The notes under the pieces are model-generated. The model was not told where the DNA came from. It saw only the letters and a list, made by a program, of their open reading frames with translations, and searched no databases. Below, in pieces: positions 46,946 through 60,375 of a stretch of DNA of 64,000 nucleotides. The position numbers were made by a program, and so were the translations under genes. The stretch spans positions 434,001 through 498,000 of the forward strand of contig MCFH01000028.1 of the NCBI GenBank assembly GCA_002104945.1, in the 5' to 3' direction. The first letter of the stretch is position 1. Each line of letters starts with the position of its first letter. The stretch is from Piromyces finnis finn (taxonomy: Eukaryota > Fungi > Neocallimastigomycota).

Positions 46946-49222
46946 TTAACAGTTGGATGGAATACCACACCAGTCATTGTTTTCAACACCCCATTTACCA
47001 TCTTGGTCTTCGTAGTAAACGTAGGAACAACCGGAACAGCACTTGTAACCTTGGTTGGTGATGGCCTTTGGACAAGAACTGCCGGAATCACCACCACCGC
47101 AACCACACCATTGACCGTTTTCGACACCCCAGTCACCATCAGCATCTTGGTAAACGACTTGGCATCCGGCCTTACAACACTTGTAACCTTGGTTCTTAAT
47201 AGAAGCTGGACAGTTACCAGAAGAACTGCCGCTGTTACCAGAACCATTACCGGCACCGGAACCACCGGTAACACCATAAATGGAAAGAAGACCATTAGCA
47301 ACCATAATTTCAGTTTGACCCCAGAATCTGTGGTAAGTGAATTCTGGTGGGTTACCACCGTTAAGGAAGTTTTCAACTTGTGGCCAGTCTGGATCTTGCT
47401 TGTACTTTGGACGAATATCAATGAATTTAACACCACTCTTAATGTTGGCACCTTGAGCGTTCTTACCAGTCCAACCAGATGGAATGTAAACTTCCTTACC
47501 GAAGTTTTCGTAATCATTACGAGCTTCTAAAGCAGCATAACCAAGATCATCCTTGTAGTTTTCAATAGCATCCATAACATCAACAACAAGGTTAAGACCA
47601 TCTTGATCACCATCCTTTAAGGAAACCCAGAAGAGACCCTTAATGATAGAAGCAATGGAACCAAGATCAAGACCTTCAGCAGAAACAGTACCGTGAAGGG
47701 ATCTGTTAAGACCAGACTTGTTGAAGTTGCTCTTGTTCCATTCATCTGGGTTACCTTCCCAGGCAAGGTTAGTAGCGTGGACAATTTCACCACCGCTAAC
47801 ACGAGTAGTGTCCTTAACCCACTTAGCCCAGTTTTGACAAATAAGACCAGCTCTTTCATCACCAGAAAGGTAGTATAAAGAACAGACACGTTCCATACCC
47901 CAACCTTGCATACCAGTCCAGTTGTTGGATGGTGGGTCGTGGTAAACTGGTTGCCAATCGTACCACATACCATAGAAGGAGGTAATATCACTTGGTGGTT
48001 GAGCGTAAGCACCAGTCCATGAGTTAGTGGCACCACCAGCAATACAACCTTCTGGGGTTTGTAACCATCTGAATAATTCTAATTGACGGTCAAGAGAGGT
48101 AGCCCAATCCTTAGCACCAGTGGAAGACTTTGGCTTGAAAGCAGATTGAGTAGAAAGAATCCAAGCAGCTAATGGGGATTGGTAACCAGTGTGAGTGTGG
48201 GAAGAACCAATTCTCCAGGACCAGTCACCTTGTAAACCACCACCCCAAGCGAAGTACCAAGAGATAAGGTAGTGAGCAGAGTTCTTACCAGAACCAGCAG
48301 AACATCTATCGTAACCAACACAGTTACCAATCTTCTTGAAGTATTTATCGTATTGAGCGTAACGTAAGTAATCACCAAGCTTGGCAGCCTTAGAAGCAAC
48401 AGAAGAAAGATCTTGACCATCTTCCTTAGCCCATAACCAACCGAAGTAAGCAGCTTGAATAGCACGAGCATCAGCATCTGGAGCAGCAGTGTATCTCCAT
48501 TGCTTAGCGTAGGAGTTATCAACAGTGAAAAGATCTAAGAAACCGTTACGACCACCCCACTTCATGGCTTCCCAACATGGGTGTGGAACAGTCTTCCAAG
48601 TAGATTCGGAAGCACCACGTTGGAAGGTGTTAATGAAAGATGGCTTAGAAGTACCATCACCTTGTTGACCATAACCATACCAGTTATCACCATCAATAAT
48701 CCAGTGCATGATGTAGATATCCCAGTTACCGTAGGCTTGAGAAAGTTCCTTAGCAATTGGATCTTCACCAACAATACCATCTTGGAAAATAAGCTTAGAT
48801 GGATAACCATCAATATCATCATGTTCAGCAGCATAAGTAGCTGGAGAAGATGGGTTGTACTTACTGTTACCTGGTTGGTTCTTGCTGTCTGGAATCATGT
48901 GCTTTTCAATGTAGCTCCAAGCAGTTTCAACACCAGTGTAATCACCAGTAAGCTTACCATTAACAGCTTCTAACCAAACCCAGAAAGAGTAGGTTTCAGA
49001 TACAGATTCATGACCATGATCTGGAGCTTCGACCATAAGAGTTTCAACAGAGTGGTATGGAACATTTTCTGGTGAGAAATATTCAGATCTGTAAGAACCA
49101 TTACCAGTAATCTTGTTGTAATGTTCAGTAGCACGAGAGGCATACTTGTCATTAGCACGCTTAGAAGCGGCTAAAACGGTGCTAGCACCAAGAAGGAATA
49201 AAGCGTTTCTAATACTTGGCAT
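46946..49222 (-). CDS. cel48A: Glycoside hydrolase family 48 cellulase with two C-terminal fungal (non-catalytic, CBM10-like) dockerin domains
   Basis: Intronless 758-aa ORF with a signal peptide. GH48 motifs: [46 protein letters not shown] and YHRFWGQ. A G/S/N linker leads to two CP..I..QGYKCC...V.Y.D.DG.WGVEN..WCG repeats. Confidence 0.97.
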
Positions 49223-53968: not shown

Positions 53969-56292
53969 TTTTTTTTAATTTATATTAATTAAATTTATGA
54001 AAAATTATTATTTTTGATATTATTAATTTTGAACTATTTAGCACTTATTAATAACTTTGTATTGTTGATATATTTCCCCTCGCCTTTACTATATTAAATT
54101 TTAATTTAAAGAGATAATATATGAAAAAAAAGTAGATATTTTCAAAGTAATAGTAAAATTACAAATTTATTTGGATATTATAATTTAATTTATACACATA
54201 TAGATATTAAAAAAAAAGATTAGCAGTTAATTTAATAAAAATATTTCGAACATTTGATAGAAATTATATATAATCTTTTCATAATAGTATTATTCATTAA
54301 TAGTAAATCAATTTAAAAAAAGAATTTTATAATCTCTAATTATGTTATGTCTTATTATATAAAATATATTTTTATATATAATTAAATAATGATTATAACA
54401 TATACCTAAAAAGAAGAAAAAATAAACTTTAATAAAATGAAGGGGAATATATTAATAATAAATTTAAATTAACAAATAATAAATTAATTTAAAGAAGAAA
54501 AATTAATCTCCTTTAAACAAAGTTAGTTTAAAAAAATAAAATATTATAGGCTAATAATAATTAAAAATTATTAAGTAAAAAAAAAAAAAAAAAAAAAAAA
54601 GTATACATATGAATATATTTGTATACATATAATGTATACATATAATGTAATGTGTTAATACATTAATGTAAATTTTTAACAGAAAATTTTAAAAAAGATG
54701 ATGAGTTTTTTATTCGTTAAAAATTAACAAATTACATGCAATAATAAATCAATAATAATCTTTAAAAATAAAAATGAAGAATATTAAATAATATATTTTA
54801 TTATTAATTATTAATATTAAAAAAAAAAAAGGATGAATAATAAAAATATGAAAATATATACCTTATTGATTTAACAATTATATATTTAAAATTATCATGC
54901 ATTAGATCAAATTCATTTTAATTTTAATATACGATAATGTATAAAATAAAGGATTATGATTGGGTAATATTAATTCCAATCAATTCGATATATAATTAAA
55001 ATTTTGATTTTAATTATAAAAATAAAAAAATGTTTATTACACATATAATTATTACATTATTTATATATGTATACATAACCAACTTATTAACTTGAAATAA
55101 ATATTAATATTTATTAAGCAACAAATATAATTTTTCTTTTTAAATATGAATTAAATATTTAACTTATATTTGAATAGTGCTTTAATAGTATAATTATAAT
55201 TTATTTTTTATTCTTTTTCTTTATCTTTTTTTATATTAAGAAATGAAGATAGTGAATAGTATTTATAATTAGTATTTATTATTAGTATTGTTATTATTAA
55301 ATAGCCTTATATTCAAAAAAAAAAACTTAACATTTATATTTAATTAATTATTACAATTTATCTGATGATTTTTATAATTATATAATTATTAATCCACAAA
55401 ATACCCAAATATATAAAAAATGATTAATTAATTAAAACTTTACTTATTTTATACATCTTTTTCTTACCCCAAGAAAATTATTAAAGCTTTAAAAGTTATT
55501 GTTACACCAAAAAAATGGAAAAAGTAGATAAAAATTACAAAATCGAGATAAAAATGAAAATTATTAATAAAAATATAATATTAAATACATAGAAAATATA
55601 ATGTTTAAATATATACATAACTGGAATAATAAAAAGGTAGAAATGGCATATAACATCACATAAAAGGTTATTACTAAAAATCTTTTATTATATTCTTTAA
55701 ATATTTATAAAATATTCTTTTTTTTATATTTTTTTCTTCTATTATTTTATAAAAACTTAATTTATAATGCATTCTTTAACATAAAAAAATTGACCAATAA
55801 TATCTAAAAAATTTAATTGAAATTAAAATATCTAATATATATTACGGGTGTAAAGAACACAATTTTTTTTATATTGTTTTCTTTCTTTTATTTTTTGATG
55901 TTTACTCTCAAATAAGGACAAAACCTTTTTTACTTAACATATTTTAAGGTTAAATAATTATTAATTAAAATAACTGCCTATAAAATAAATAGGAAAGATA
56001 ATTATTATCTATTAAACAATATATGATAGTTAATAATAATCTTAATAAATTCAATATTAAAAATTTTTCAAAAAAAAAAAGTATAAATACTGAAAATAAT
56101 TTCAAAAAAAAGTTGTTGTTTTTTTTTTATATATATATAATTATTTATACATTCTTTAATATTTTTTATTTTTACAATAAAAGTAATATTATTATAAATA
56201 TATATATAAATATAAATAAAAAAAATTTTTTATATAAATAATATTAATATTGGTATATATATTATATATAGAATTCTTTTTTTAATTGCACC

Positions 56293-57386
56293 ATGTCTGA
56301 AACCCAAACCGTATACATTACACCAACATTCTCAAGTACTGTTTTAAGTTGTTCAACAACTCAAAGAAGTACAGTTGGTCAACTCCGTAATAGAATTTCA
56401 AAGCAATATCTTGGTATTGTTGATAACTCTGAAAATATTATTTTTGAAGATGATGAAAGAAAATGTTTATTAAAGGATGACGCTATTTTAAAGGATAAAC
56501 AAAAGATTAATCTTTCTCTTCATAATTACCCAACTTATTCTAGTGCTTTATCAAAAAACCTTTCAAACTACTTTGATTTAAAAAATAAAGATAAGTATGA
56601 TACTACTGCTAATGGTAAATATTAAAATTTAATTTCAATATTATAATATAAAATAACTATCGATAATAATTATTATTTTATCAATTGCGAATAATATATA
56701 TAATATATATAATAATATGCAAATTAATAAAATAATTATTTTAATATTTTACAATAAATAACAAATATTAATTGTCTTTTATTTTTTAAAAATATTCAAT
56801 AGAAAAGTTTTCAAAAACTTCTTTAATTATAAACTCTATTTTCATTGTTCTTGGTACTATTTTTATTTCTGTATTTGCCCAAATTTCTTTCCATCTCCCA
56901 ATTGATAAGGAAGTTCCAATTACATTCCAAACCTTTGCTGTTCTCTTAAATGGTGCTGTTCAAAGTCCACTTAACAGCTTTTTATCAAGTGTTCTTTACA
57001 TTTTAGCTGGTTGTATTGGTATTCCTGTTTTTGCTGGCTTTTCTCATGGTGTTTCTTCATTAACTGGTTACAGTGGTGGTTTCTTAATTGGTTTCATATT
57101 CTCTTCTCTTGTTACTGGTTTCCTTTCAAAAAGAGGTTGGGATAAGCAATATCGTAAGATTTGGCTTTCTATGATTATTGGTAACCTTGTTATCTATTTA
57201 TTCGGTTTTTCATGGTTCGCTTACAAAACTAAAAGTTTCTGGGGTGCTTTCCCAAAGGTTGTTTTCCCATTTATTCCAGGTGATCTTATTAAGATTCTTC
57301 TTGCTTCTCTTTTCGTTCCACTTGGATGGAAAATTTTCTATTTCCGTAACAAGAAATTAGAATTAGATATTGAAGAACAAAATTAA
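56293..57386 (+). CDS. bioY: BioY biotin transporter (ECF S-component) with N-terminal extension; 2 exons, 301 aa
   Basis: Exon 1 is 56293-56614, the phase-1 GT-AG intron is 56615-56802, and exon 2 is 56803-57386 in frame. Exon 2 has BioY motifs VPITFQTFAVLL, LYILAGCIGIPVFAG, LTGYSGGFLIGF, IIGNLVIYLFGFSW and FPFIPGDLIK, with about six hydrophobic segments. Confidence 0.88.
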
Positions 57387-57909
57387 ATATAATTAATTAT
57401 ATTTATGATTAACAAATTTTATTATATATTTAATTAATGTAATATAGAAAAAAAACGCTTAATCATTATCTATTTGTATACAATAAATTTAGAGTTTTAT
57501 TTTTATTATATTTAATAATTAGAATTACTATTTATTCATCATTTAATATATTTAATAAAAATTCAATAATTTAATAAAAAAATTTCTAAAAAAAATTGAA
57601 GTATTGAGGGTTAGATTTGTATAACAAAAATTAATTAAAGGTTAGGGATAAATTATTTAATAATTATATATTATATAAAAAATTGTTCATATGGTTTTTT
57701 TATTATTAGATTCTAGGTTTCTTCATCCAATTTTTATTGTCAGTCTTTTTTTTTTTTTTTTTACTTTTTTTTCTTAAACAAAAATAAAAGAATCCTATTG
57801 ATTTCCTTTCTTCCTTGTTGCTACAAAAAAATTTCCTTAATGAGCTTAAATTGATAAAAAATATTTATAAAATTAAAATTATTATTTATATTTTCCTTCT
57901 TGATAAAAC

Positions 57910-58255
57910 GTAGAAATTAATAAGGTGGAGCAAAAATATATAAATAAATGGTTTTATTGTTCATTGAGAGTTTTTTTTTTAACAATATAGTTCCTATCAT
58001 TAGAAATTCTATAAGGCTACTTTTTAACAAGATGAGTAATATACCTAAGGTTATTATGTTATTAGGATGTTTTGCTGCGAATCGTTATGCCAAAGAAATA
58101 TTCTAAATGATTTATATATAGAGTTTAATGTTAAAAACACTTTAAAAAAAATTGTTAAAAGTTAGTGGACACTATATTATCATCCTTTATATTATTTGAT
58201 TTATTAGGTAGAGATATAACCCATATAATAATTTATAGAATTCATCAAACTATTA
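57910..58255 (+). mobile_element. Old, heavily decayed 3' end of the same LINE family
   Basis: ATAAGGTGGAGCAAAA ~ ATAAGGCGGAACAAAG; CCTATCATTAG; GCTACTTTTT; TTAGTGGACACTATATTATCAT ~ TTAGTGGACACTACACTATCAT; ATTTATTAGGTAG; GAATTCATCAAACT ~ GAGTTCATTGAACT. The blocks are in the same order as in 59970-60375 and 46110-46560. Confidence 0.75.
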
Positions 58256-58259
58256 TTCA

Positions 58260-60375
58260 TTTTGATTGCAATAATTATCGTGGTATTTCTCTCATCAACG
58301 TAGGTCTTAAAATCATTTCAAAAATTGTAATTAATAGAATTTCAAAGTATGCTCTTTTTCATAATTTTATAAGACCTGAGCAATTTGGTTTTCGCAATAA
58401 AGAAGAATGCATTAGCTTATTTATTTCCATTAGAGAAATCTGTCAAAGAAGAAAATTTAAAGGAAAAGCCACTTATGTTGCTTTTCTTGACCTTAAAAAA
58501 GCATACGACTCAGTTCCTATTTTTAATATCCTTACAAAGTTATATAAATTAGGTATACGTGGTAAGTGTTTTGGCTTTCTCAATAATCTCTACTCTACCT
58601 CAAAAGCTCGTGCACGTTTCTTGGATATGCTTTCCAATGAATTCCCTATCAATCGTGGTGTAAGACAAAGATGTCCTCTTTCTCCTATTCTATTTAATCT
58701 CTTCATCAATGATATTTTAAATAAATGTGAAAGGCTTGGGGTTAGCTTAGGAAATAAACGTTTCTGTGGTGGCCTTTTCGCTGATGACATTGTTCTAATT
58801 GCTCCTAGCAAGAAGAACCTTCAAAAAATGCTCAATCTAGTCCTTGATTGGGCTAATTTAAATGAAATGTCTTTTGGAATAAATAAATGTGCAACTATTG
58901 TTATTAAACCTATCAACTTTAATAGATCCCCTAGTTATGTCGACCCAACATTTTACATCAGTATGTACTCGATTCCAAAGGTTTCTTGCTATACTTATCT
59001 TGGAATCCCATTTGACGAAGATCTCTCTCTGACTTCTATTCTGTCTAATATGTACAAAAAAGTTCAGAAATCTTTATTCTCTTTTAAGAGCTTTAAGAGC
59101 TTCCTCACTAACAATTGTATTCCTATTGGTTTAAAAAATATAGTAATTCATTTCTATATTTTAAGCAAAGTATCTTATTATACTCCTTTACTTGGTTCCA
59201 ACAAAAATAGAACTAGAAGAGTCCAATCTCTTATCAATACTGCTGTTTTTTATAGAGTGTCAATAGCTTTCACAATAAAAGTCTTAATAACAAAGATTTT
59301 GTTTTTGAATAAAATTCATTTATTAGTCTGTATGCTCTTACAAGAGTACAAGAGATATGAAGATTCCTACCCTTTCAGGTATTTGTGCTGCGCAACAAGT
59401 GAAATGCTTTGTTAAATGGAGAAAATCAAATTGTATAATTAAAGATCTCGTCCGTTCTATTCCTTCCATGTCTCATTACTCTTGGGCCAAAGAATCTTGT
59501 TCACTTCATAAGAAGCTTATGAAAATAAATATTAAAAGTACTAAAGATATTAGAGAATACTATTGGAATAATAGTAGCCTAAATAATGGAAGTCAAGCCT
59601 TCAGATATACTAACAACAAATTCCTTAATTCAAATCGCCTAATGCATATCGGTCTCAACAAACCTCACTTAAATTTAGGAATTACCTGGATTATTCGTAT
59701 TCGATGCGGTTATGAATACACTACTTGAATTGCTATTGCCAGTAATAGAGTTACTCCTGACTGCCCTCGTGTCTGTCCATGTTGCGGATATGACGAACAA
59801 TCTTTTTACCATTGGATATTAGAATGTTCTGCATTCTCTGAGTACAGAACTTTTTCATTTTGCTTTCTTGACGATCTTTTTACCCTTTTTTTACAATAAA
59901 TATAAGAATCAATTCATCACATACTTACTCCCTGAAATGGAAGTAAGAAAAACAGTTTATAACTATATTTTTACGTTCCTTCTTGGTGGAACTTTAGCTT
60001 ATGATGAGCTACAAATCGATAAGACGGAACAAAGACATTTGAATGAACAACTTTACAGTTCATCGGGGTCTCATGTTCCATATGTAGAGGGTCTCGCGGC
60101 TTTTTAATAGGTTTAGTAAGACACCTAACGTAATCAAGAGTGCCGACATCGTACCGATATGGCAAAGGAACATTTCTAATGTTCCGTACACAGGGTTCAA
60201 TGTTAGTATTTCTTTGAATAAAAACATTATGAACTCATGGGAGAGTTTAGTGGACACTACACTATCATACCTGATGTTACTTCTTTTTTTTATTTCATTT
60301 AATTTATTAGGTAGGGACCAATCCCACACAGTACAAATTGCAGAGTTCATTGAACTTTTATGCAACTTAAATAAT
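58260..60375 (+). mobile_element. 5'-truncated, disabled non-LTR retrotransposon (LINE): RT domain, C-terminal Cys/His knuckle and 3' UTR
   Basis: DCNNYRGISL, EQFGFR, FLDLKKAYDSV, GVRQRCPLSP (G>R in the conserved motif), LFADDIVL, YTYLGIPF and CPCCG...HWILEC. Frameshifts lie near 59240 and 59890, and there is an in-frame TGA at 59726-59728. An AT-rich tail follows 60375. Confidence 0.93.

Follow-up and report, generated by a model that had tools for sequence, protein, structure and literature searches.

Biotin uptake depends in yeast on Vht1, a transporter of the major facilitator superfamily (MFS), and in animals on SMVT, and both belong to folds and families that are unrelated to BioY. BioY-type proteins, the substrate-binding (S) components of transporters of the energy-coupling factor (ECF) type, are for their part regarded as a prokaryotic speciality, and S-components have both of their termini in the cytoplasm. 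Some BioYs are solitary, and all eight of those that Finkenwirth, Kirsch and Eitinger studied (2013; summary in PMC4049904) allowed an E. coli ΔbioH ΔyigM strain to grow on 1 nM biotin. What, then, should be made of a BioY encoded on a fungal chromosome? This article deals with such a gene, located at positions 56293 to 57386 of a 64-kb stretch of DNA from the anaerobic fungus Piromyces finnis (contig MCFH01000028.1, positions 434,001 to 498,000, referred to below as the window, in whose numbering all coordinates are given). A sequence-only reading of this DNA had seen in it a BioY acquired from gut bacteria and domesticated. Our analysis leads to another origin: the gene is probably a member of an old eukaryotic family of fused genes, here called Ubl-BioY, in which the BioY domain follows a ubiquitin-like (Ubl) domain, and its product would be a solitary biotin carrier.

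Compared with the solitary BioYs of bacteria, the P. finnis protein has the same six-helix fold, the same Pfam domain (PF02632), the invariant glycines and the PGDxxK motif. The likeness extends to the surroundings of the gene, as 79 of the 80 nearest bacterial loci have no adjacent ATP-binding cassette (ABC) ATPase gene; the single ABC-ATPase-like open reading frame (ORF) found within 2.5 kb lies on the opposite strand, in a screen based on crude Walker A and LSGG[QE] motifs that did not search for T components. The BioY domain thus seems to come from a lineage of the type without an adjacent ABC ATPase gene. In the window itself, the ABC signature LSGG[QE] is absent from every frame, in agreement with the earlier statement that no ECF T or ATPase gene is found there. 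Unlike a solitary bacterial BioY, however, the P. finnis protein is eukaryotic and its gene bears an intron, it carries an N-terminal Ubl domain and a linker helix, its loop 1 is longer by one inserted residue, its C-terminal tail is extended and acidic, and its identity to bacterial proteins does not exceed 45%. With Vht1 and SMVT it has in common only its presumed role, the uptake of external biotin. The other half of the protein brings to mind Herp/Usa1, Dsc3 and TMUB1, the type-2 Ubl-domain proteins, in which a beta-grasp Ubl without a C-terminal Gly-Gly is likewise tethered to transmembrane (TM) helices, although no sequence kinship with them is detectable apart from the general ubiquitin fold. 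Membrane proteins that bear a Ubl domain on the cytosolic side typically belong to the machinery of sorting and quality control, and these three act in endoplasmic reticulum-associated degradation (ERAD) or sorting complexes rather than in the transport of solutes.

GenBank already holds an annotation of the gene. Its spliced coding sequence of 906 nt gives a 301-residue protein identical to residues 11-311 of ORX48166.1 ("BioY-domain-containing protein [Piromyces finnis]"). The 188-nt intron that separates the two coding exons is precisely skipped in contigs from four P. finnis RNA runs (three studies), which confirms the splicing foreseen from the sequence. It occupies the same position and phase in both Anaeromyces robustus copies (a and b), two Neocallimastix genomes have it there as well, and an Anaeromyces RNA contig (Logan, L083) carries the 301-codon ORF uninterrupted. 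The structure of the locus is as follows.

56002 to 56182, plus strand: 5′ untranslated (UTR) exon, minimum extent; contig X1 lies on 56002-56101 and has 81 further letters fitting 56102-56182, a part that was deduced arithmetically, the aligner having skipped it as a repeat.
56183 to 56271, plus strand: inferred 5′ UTR intron of 89 nt, GT (56183-56184) to AG (56270-56271); pieces of contigs X1 and X3 begin at 56272.
56293 to 56614, plus strand: coding exon 1, residues 1-107 and the first base of codon 108, carrying the Ubl domain and the linker helix.
56302 to 56520, plus strand: predicted ubiquitin-like beta-grasp domain, residues ~4-76, from an AlphaFold2 (AF2) model, Foldseek and the family profile.
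56527 to 56598, plus strand: junction motif YPTY and predicted helix 82-102, leading from the Ubl to TM helix 1 (TM1), from motif conservation and structure prediction.
56615 to 56802, plus strand: spliceosomal intron of 188 nt, GT to AG, phase 1, with GTAAAT donor and TAG acceptor, from RNA-run contigs.
56803 to 57386, plus strand: coding exon 2, which carries the six-helix BioY S-component domain (PF02632, 4DVE) and an acidic C-terminal tail of the eukaryote type and ends with TAA (57384-57386).
57273 to 57293, plus strand: PFIPGDxxK motif of helix 6 (D268, K271), from an alignment of 67 BioY sequences.
57387 to 57458, plus strand: 3′ UTR, minimum extent, from pieces of contigs X1 and X2; one contig extends beyond 57700.

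Base composition and neighbourhood also mark this as a genuine spliced nuclear gene, as had been proposed. The window is AT-rich, and the GC content of the gene is 0.31, with 0.20 at third codon positions (GC3), next to a GC3 of 0.19 for SPB1, which lies divergent from the BioY gene at 53968-50813 on the minus strand, where the sequence-only reading had placed it, and which is also its neighbour in Anaeromyces. As for codons, GGT is used in 17 of 19 cases, GCT in 10 of 11, GTT in 15 of 17, AAG in 12 of 23 and TTC in 16 of 27. The earlier claim about codon usage therefore holds for the host-like preference but not for the likeness to highly biased genes, since the bias is moderate and far below that of the GH48 gene of the window. 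Both domains are under purifying selection, with dN/dS values between P. finnis and A. robustus of 0.116 for the N-terminal part and 0.123 for the BioY part. At the 5′ end, the ORX48166.1 model begins 10 residues upstream (MEKNSFFNCT), with a small exon near 55515 (ATGGAAAA) as the apparent source; these extra residues look like an annotation artefact, because the RNA contigs splice 56002-56182 to 56272 and the orthologues all begin with MS(E/T)TQ. The RNA-supported leader also contains an upstream ORF, which begins at 56023 and would stop just ahead of the main ATG.

The BioY domain of exon 2 is complete, as expected from the sequence-only reading, whose four quoted motifs all appear when 56805-57386 is translated in frame 1. 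Residues 36-173 of the exon 2 translation match Pfam BioY (PF02632) with an expectation value (E) of 6.5e-39 and 133.5 bits (cut-off 25), over profile positions 3-137 of 140, and a sequence search with exon 2 finds the Lactococcus lactis BioY (4DVE, E 9.6e-8), which is to our knowledge the only solved BioY structure. A scan of both exons against NCBIfam gave no match. The AF2 model of this part reaches a predicted local distance difference test (pLDDT) score of ~90 over residues 110-290, and it fits 4DVE, which comes first in Foldseek (E 1e-8, TM-score on the target 0.78-0.80), followed by FolT, ThiT, RibU and PanT. The residues that are invariant in the 67-sequence alignment are all present in the P. 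finnis protein (G180, G190, G200, G242 and K271), as are those conserved in at least 90% of the sequences (P146, P182, F184, Y239, F264 and D268). The D268/K271 motif of helix 6 is presumably involved in biotin binding, judging from the mutagenesis of the Rhodobacter BioY. The glycine of the bacterial "PITGQT" motif is replaced by phenylalanine in the anaerobic fungi, a change that is not common to all eukaryotic members.

Exon 1 is not the mere leader that it had been taken for. It is 77-93% identical across all the anaerobic-fungus orthologues and, according to profile comparison and modelling, it encodes a conserved ubiquitin-like domain. The P. finnis sequence alone does not reveal this, as a homology search with exon 1 finds only split gene models of the same anaerobic fungi. 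A profile built from 22 N-terminal domains of the family, including those of the other eukaryotes described below, does match single ubiquitin chains of the Protein Data Bank (PDB), with E-values from 1.8e-7 to 1e-5 and positions 4-78 aligned to ubiquitin 2-73. Five of these 22 N-termini are recognized by PF00240 (best E 3.6e-5), and one family member weakly matches Dsc3_N (E 0.013). Structure prediction behaved in the same way. With a BioY-rich alignment, shallow at the N-terminus, full-length AF2 left that end unfolded (pLDDT ~32), and the Ubl fold was obtained only once diverse eukaryotic N-termini had entered the alignment. The resulting model (pLDDT 76) has a beta-beta-alpha-beta-beta arrangement, with strands at 4-11, 18-23, 49-52 and 70-76 and a helix at 28-38. 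Nearly all of its top 50 Foldseek matches are ubiquitin, SUMO or ISG15-type Ubl structures (TM-score on the target ~0.8, root mean square deviation 1.6-2.2 Å). Structure matches to the N-terminus in the ESM Atlas (TM-score 0.56-0.66) offer a lead, while no Ubl-BioY cluster of at least 50 members is found there. The last strand of the Ubl continues into an L(H/R/K)xYP(T/S)Y motif, whose conservation spans the anaerobic fungi, Gonapodya and Amoebozoa, and then into a predicted helix that leads to TM1. No family member has a C-terminal Gly-Gly after the Ubl and the chain runs on into the linker and TM1, so this is a built-in domain and not a conjugatable modifier.

The same fusion turns up far from the rumen. 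When the BioY domain was compared by phmmer with 1.84 billion representatives (50%-identity clustering), 8,738 relatives were found, and outside the anaerobic fungi the best matches are eukaryotic proteins of ~290-400 residues with BioY at the C-terminus, the sole bacterial exception being P0143. Ubl-BioY proteins are thus encountered in Gonapodya sp. JEL0774, a free-living monoblepharid fungus (Monoblepharidomycetes), and in the amoebozoans Ceratiomyxa fruticulosa, Dracoamoeba jomungandri, Balamuthia mandrillaris (where the annotation reads "Biotin transporter") and Tieghemostelium lacteum (named "Ubiquitin-like domain-containing protein" in UniRef), as well as, by profile search, in Dictyostelium purpureum (P0295) and Acytostelium subglobosum. 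Several metagenomic or metatranscriptomic sequences complete the set, and a seemingly short match (P0209) is another fusion gene, whose Ubl exon is set apart by a GT-AG intron (L084). In Gonapodya the gene is interrupted by four spliceosomal introns and lies among eukaryotic neighbours, and its intron positions differ from those of the anaerobic fungi. Aligned by hhalign, the N-terminal profiles of the anaerobic fungi and of the other eukaryotes are homologous over 69 columns, junction motif included (probability 96%, E 3.8e-9). Two further traits are found in the BioY half. The one-residue insertion of loop 1, within LPx(D/N)KxVP, is present in 25 of 26 eukaryotes as against 9 of 138 bacteria, and an extended C-terminal tail is common to the eukaryotes, the closest likeness being that between Gonapodya and the anaerobic fungi (YFR..(K/R)..(D/E)LD.E).

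Within the family, two paralogues, a and b, are found in Anaeromyces robustus (L082, L088) and in Piromyces sp. E2 (P0009, P0141). The b copies group together (Shimodaira-Hasegawa-like approximate likelihood ratio test, SH-aLRT, 97), which places the duplication before these two genera separated. The b copy of Piromyces sp. E2 is annotated as two genes, 9063 for the Ubl and 9062 for BioY. Elsewhere, a compact 20-kb metagenomic contig carries an intronless Ubl-BioY of 326 residues (L089:564-1544), with an additional hydrophobic stretch following the Ubl, beside PARP and protein-kinase genes; its source may be a protist whose genome is compact, or conceivably a giant virus. Three other metagenomic members, P0146, P0147 and P0152, end in -DDEL, -DDNL and -HHEL, which resemble retrieval tetrapeptides of the endoplasmic reticulum (ER), although this end should be cytosolic and the likeness may be due to chance.

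On the bacterial side, the nearest species representatives are environmental metagenome bins of Actinomycetota, Chloroflexota, Planctomycetota and Deinococcota, and not rumen Firmicutes or Bacteroidota. A quick maximum likelihood tree (163 rows, LG+C20) splits the fusion proteins from 136 bacterial BioYs (SH-aLRT 96), and a careful tree of 89 rows shows the same split (ultrafast bootstrap, UFBoot, 76 / SH-aLRT 95), with the anaerobic fungi monophyletic (100/100) and the order of the nearest bacteria relative to the eukaryotes poorly resolved (46/22). In its best tree, the phylogeny proposed along with the sequence-only reading puts the eukaryotes together in one clade, apart from the bacteria, and does not nest them among gut bacteria. 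Two other sequences stand out from the rest. P0198 (L085:1031-1570) is an AT-rich BioY of 179 residues without Ubl, on a densely packed metagenomic contig; it goes with the eukaryotes in the quick tree and with the bacteria in the careful one, always on a long branch (2.3-2.5), and is possibly a relative of the donor lineage or a long-branch artefact. P0143 is the bacterial protein that ranks second in the exhaustive search. Its 383 residues form two tandem, near-identical BioY domains, which may be a covalent dimer of natural origin or a product of faulty assembly; the oligomeric action ascribed to solitary BioYs lends it some interest.

How did the gene come to P. finnis? BioY being a prokaryotic family, its ultimate origin is bacterial, and one explanation would be that the ancestor of the anaerobic fungi recently received the gene from bacteria of the rumen or gut and that an intron and an unrelated 5′ exon were added afterwards. 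The anaerobic fungi are rich in bacterial transfers, according to bioRxiv 10.1101/487215, the Piromyces orthologue AWI66875.1 has been deposited under a bacterial-style name, a GH48 gene of the transferred kind lies 7 kb from the BioY gene, and an approximately unbiased (AU) test on the BioY domain is compatible with a grouping with gut-type Firmicutes (p 0.225). We nevertheless consider this course of events very improbable, since the Ubl-BioY architecture and its junction motif also exist in Gonapodya and in amoebozoan genera, with N-terminal domains that are homologous and not unrelated, since all eukaryotes come together in the best tree, since the best bacterial matches are at most 45% identical and belong to non-gut lineages, and since codon usage and GC are fully host-like. 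With one clade for the fusion and only distant, environmental bacteria next to it, transfer and fusion appear to predate the gut lifestyle, and the acquisition from gut bacteria put forward by the sequence-only reading does not stand. Still less should the gene be blamed on bacterial contamination or a chimeric assembly. Nothing speaks for such an artefact except the prokaryotic family of the domain; the RNA-backed spliceosomal intron conserved in three genera, the identity with a GenBank protein from a 676-kb contig, the synteny with SPB1 in Anaeromyces and the host-like GC and codons rule it out, so that its probability is next to nil.

The preferred history, that of an old eukaryotic Ubl-BioY gene, would run as follows. 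The BioY part would descend from a bacterial BioY of the type without an adjacent ABC ATPase gene; a single transfer and fusion would have preceded the divergence of Amoebozoa and Fungi or come early in it, unless the fused gene spread between them; the anaerobic fungi would have inherited it, most simply in a vertical manner, from a zoosporic-fungal ancestor common with Gonapodya, and would have kept it under purifying selection, with a duplication in some genera. Several points weigh against this view. In the careful tree, Gonapodya is sister to the anaerobic fungi with low support (56/47), the split between eukaryotes and bacteria has a UFBoot of only 76 with a bootstrap not fully settled, which makes the BioY-domain tree weak when taken alone, and a long stem (1.02) of skewed composition leads to the anaerobic fungi. 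Forcing the anaerobic fungi to group with gut-type Firmicutes BioYs is not rejected by the AU test (delta lnL 20.5). The 108 N-terminal residues of P. finnis, taken alone, match no Pfam family, PF00240 included. Besides the Neocallimastigomycota, Gonapodya is the only fungus among the matches listed, so vertical descent implies many losses. Lastly, biotin uptake may be dispensable, as Neocallimastix lanati has a biotin pathway that looked incomplete and yet does not require biotin in defined medium (PMC8561657). Given the short domain, the long stem and the AU result, the case for a common origin rests mainly on the fusion, the junction motif and the insertion, with which the tree is concordant. 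Some of the same points would suit a transfer between eukaryotes, for instance from an amoebozoan or another protist, by which the fused gene would have reached the anaerobic fungi or their zoosporic-fungal ancestor. The distribution is patchy, with no fungi listed beyond Gonapodya and the Neocallimastigomycota, the Amoebozoa are not monophyletic within the clade but mixed with metagenomic sequences, the node that joins Gonapodya to the anaerobic fungi is the poorly supported one just mentioned, and intron positions differ between the two. Set against this, the best tree has both fungal lineages as sisters, they have a similar C-terminal tail, and the patchiness may stem from the 50%-identity clustering and from the best 150 matches being those listed. 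A transfer of this sort therefore seems unlikely to us, though well worth keeping in mind, and descent of the fused gene within the zoosporic fungi is retained as the simpler account.

What the protein does can be proposed from its architecture. The cytoplasmic termini of BioY, together with its flanks rich in lysine, point to a cytosolic location for the Ubl. The six-helix BioY would bind biotin on the non-cytosolic side and carry it across the membrane without a T/A module, while the Ubl, connected to it through the YP(T/S)Y junction followed by an amphipathic helix, would sit on the cytosolic face as a docking or sorting module, where it could bring in a partner or govern how the carrier is trafficked or turned over. 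By analogy with the solitary bacterial BioYs, stand-alone biotin transport by the P. finnis protein is plausible, and a module-independent carrier moderately likely; a role of the Ubl-YPTY arm in sorting, turnover or partner docking is speculative. The BioY fold might also have been kept for something other than import at the plasma membrane, such as the export of biotin, or of biotin derived from biocytin, from an endomembrane compartment (phagolysosome or vacuole) with the Ubl as sorting tag, or the carriage of dethiobiotin. Outside fungi the holders of the gene are mostly phagotrophic amoebae, the weak match of one member to Dsc3_N recalls sorting and quality-control proteins, and the "PITGQT" motif has phenylalanine for glycine in the anaerobic fungi; yet all the BioY residues that are invariant in the family are kept, PGDxxK included, and the G-to-F change does not extend to all eukaryotic members. 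This alternative is possible, if doubtful, and biotin import remains the function that we favour. Bolder still, and in our opinion rather unlikely, is the idea of Ubl-BioY as an ancient class of vitamin carrier, specific to Amorphea (Amoebozoa with Fungi and their relatives), in which the Ubl and the YP(T/S)Y helix would replace the ECF T/A module, for instance in holding or re-orienting the S-component, or in which the Ubl would route the carrier to phagosomal or endolysosomal membranes for the salvage of biotin from prey. If either were true, the working of an ECF-type S-component in a eukaryotic membrane would be demonstrated for the first time.

Eukaryotic BioYs have been recorded so far only as separate entries in lists of horizontal gene transfer (HGT), one for Dictyostelium and one for anaerobic fungi, with no function assigned. 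Dictyostelium gene DDB_G0292424 and its D. purpureum orthologue 79107 figure among candidate bacterial transfers, with the function "Unknown" (Sucgang et al., 2011, PMC3188802, Table 2). The D. purpureum BioY protein (P0295) has the architecture, the junction motif and the clade of the P. finnis protein, whereas the Dictyostelium protein is ~32% identical to the Piromyces one over its full length, and the literature searched treats the gene as a transfer in the Dictyostelium lineage, linking it neither to the fungal genes nor to an Ubl fusion. On the fungal side, AWI66875.1 ("BioMNY high-affinity biotin transporter [Piromyces sp.]") is an orthologue of 301 residues, 93% identical, whose name suggests that a BioMNY complex exists; nothing observed here speaks for one. 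Transcripts judged to be horizontally transferred were deposited individually in GenBank by Murphy et al. (2019), as stated in bioRxiv 10.1101/487215, and from its name, organism label and accession series AWI66875.1 most likely belongs to that catalogue; neither "BioY" nor "biotin" occurs in the main text or in one supplement of the preprint. The two words are likewise absent from Ciach et al. (2024) and Wang et al. (2019). The presence of the gene in bulk HGT lists, which had been anticipated, is thus certain for the Dictyostelium orthologue and probable for that of Piromyces. No paper that links the fungal and the amoebozoan genes or describes the Ubl-BioY fusion was found in the literature searched, from which many subscription journals are missing. 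Should these entries indeed belong to one shared family, one item would drop from the tally of gut adaptations by HGT in the Neocallimastigomycota, and the transfer would be dated to before or early in the split between Amoebozoa and Fungi, unless the fused gene spread between them. Dictyostelium would then offer a tractable model both for an S-component without ECF module and for the contribution of its tethered Ubl. The gene also bears on the biotin economy of the anaerobic fungi, with a pathway that seems incomplete and a defined medium in which biotin proved non-essential (PMC8561657).

Two other genes of the window deserve a word. On the minus strand, at 46946-49222, an intronless ORF of 758 residues encodes a GH48 cellulase (E 2.3e-261) with two CBM10 dockerin-type modules, a typical cellulosome gene of anaerobic fungi, whose GC content (0.44) and codon bias are much above those of its neighbours. 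Just downstream of the BioY gene, on the plus strand, a reverse-transcriptase ORF (RVT_1, E 4.4e-33) extends from 58165 to 59415 and continues to ~60400 in a GC-richer block, and is probably the remnant of a retroelement.

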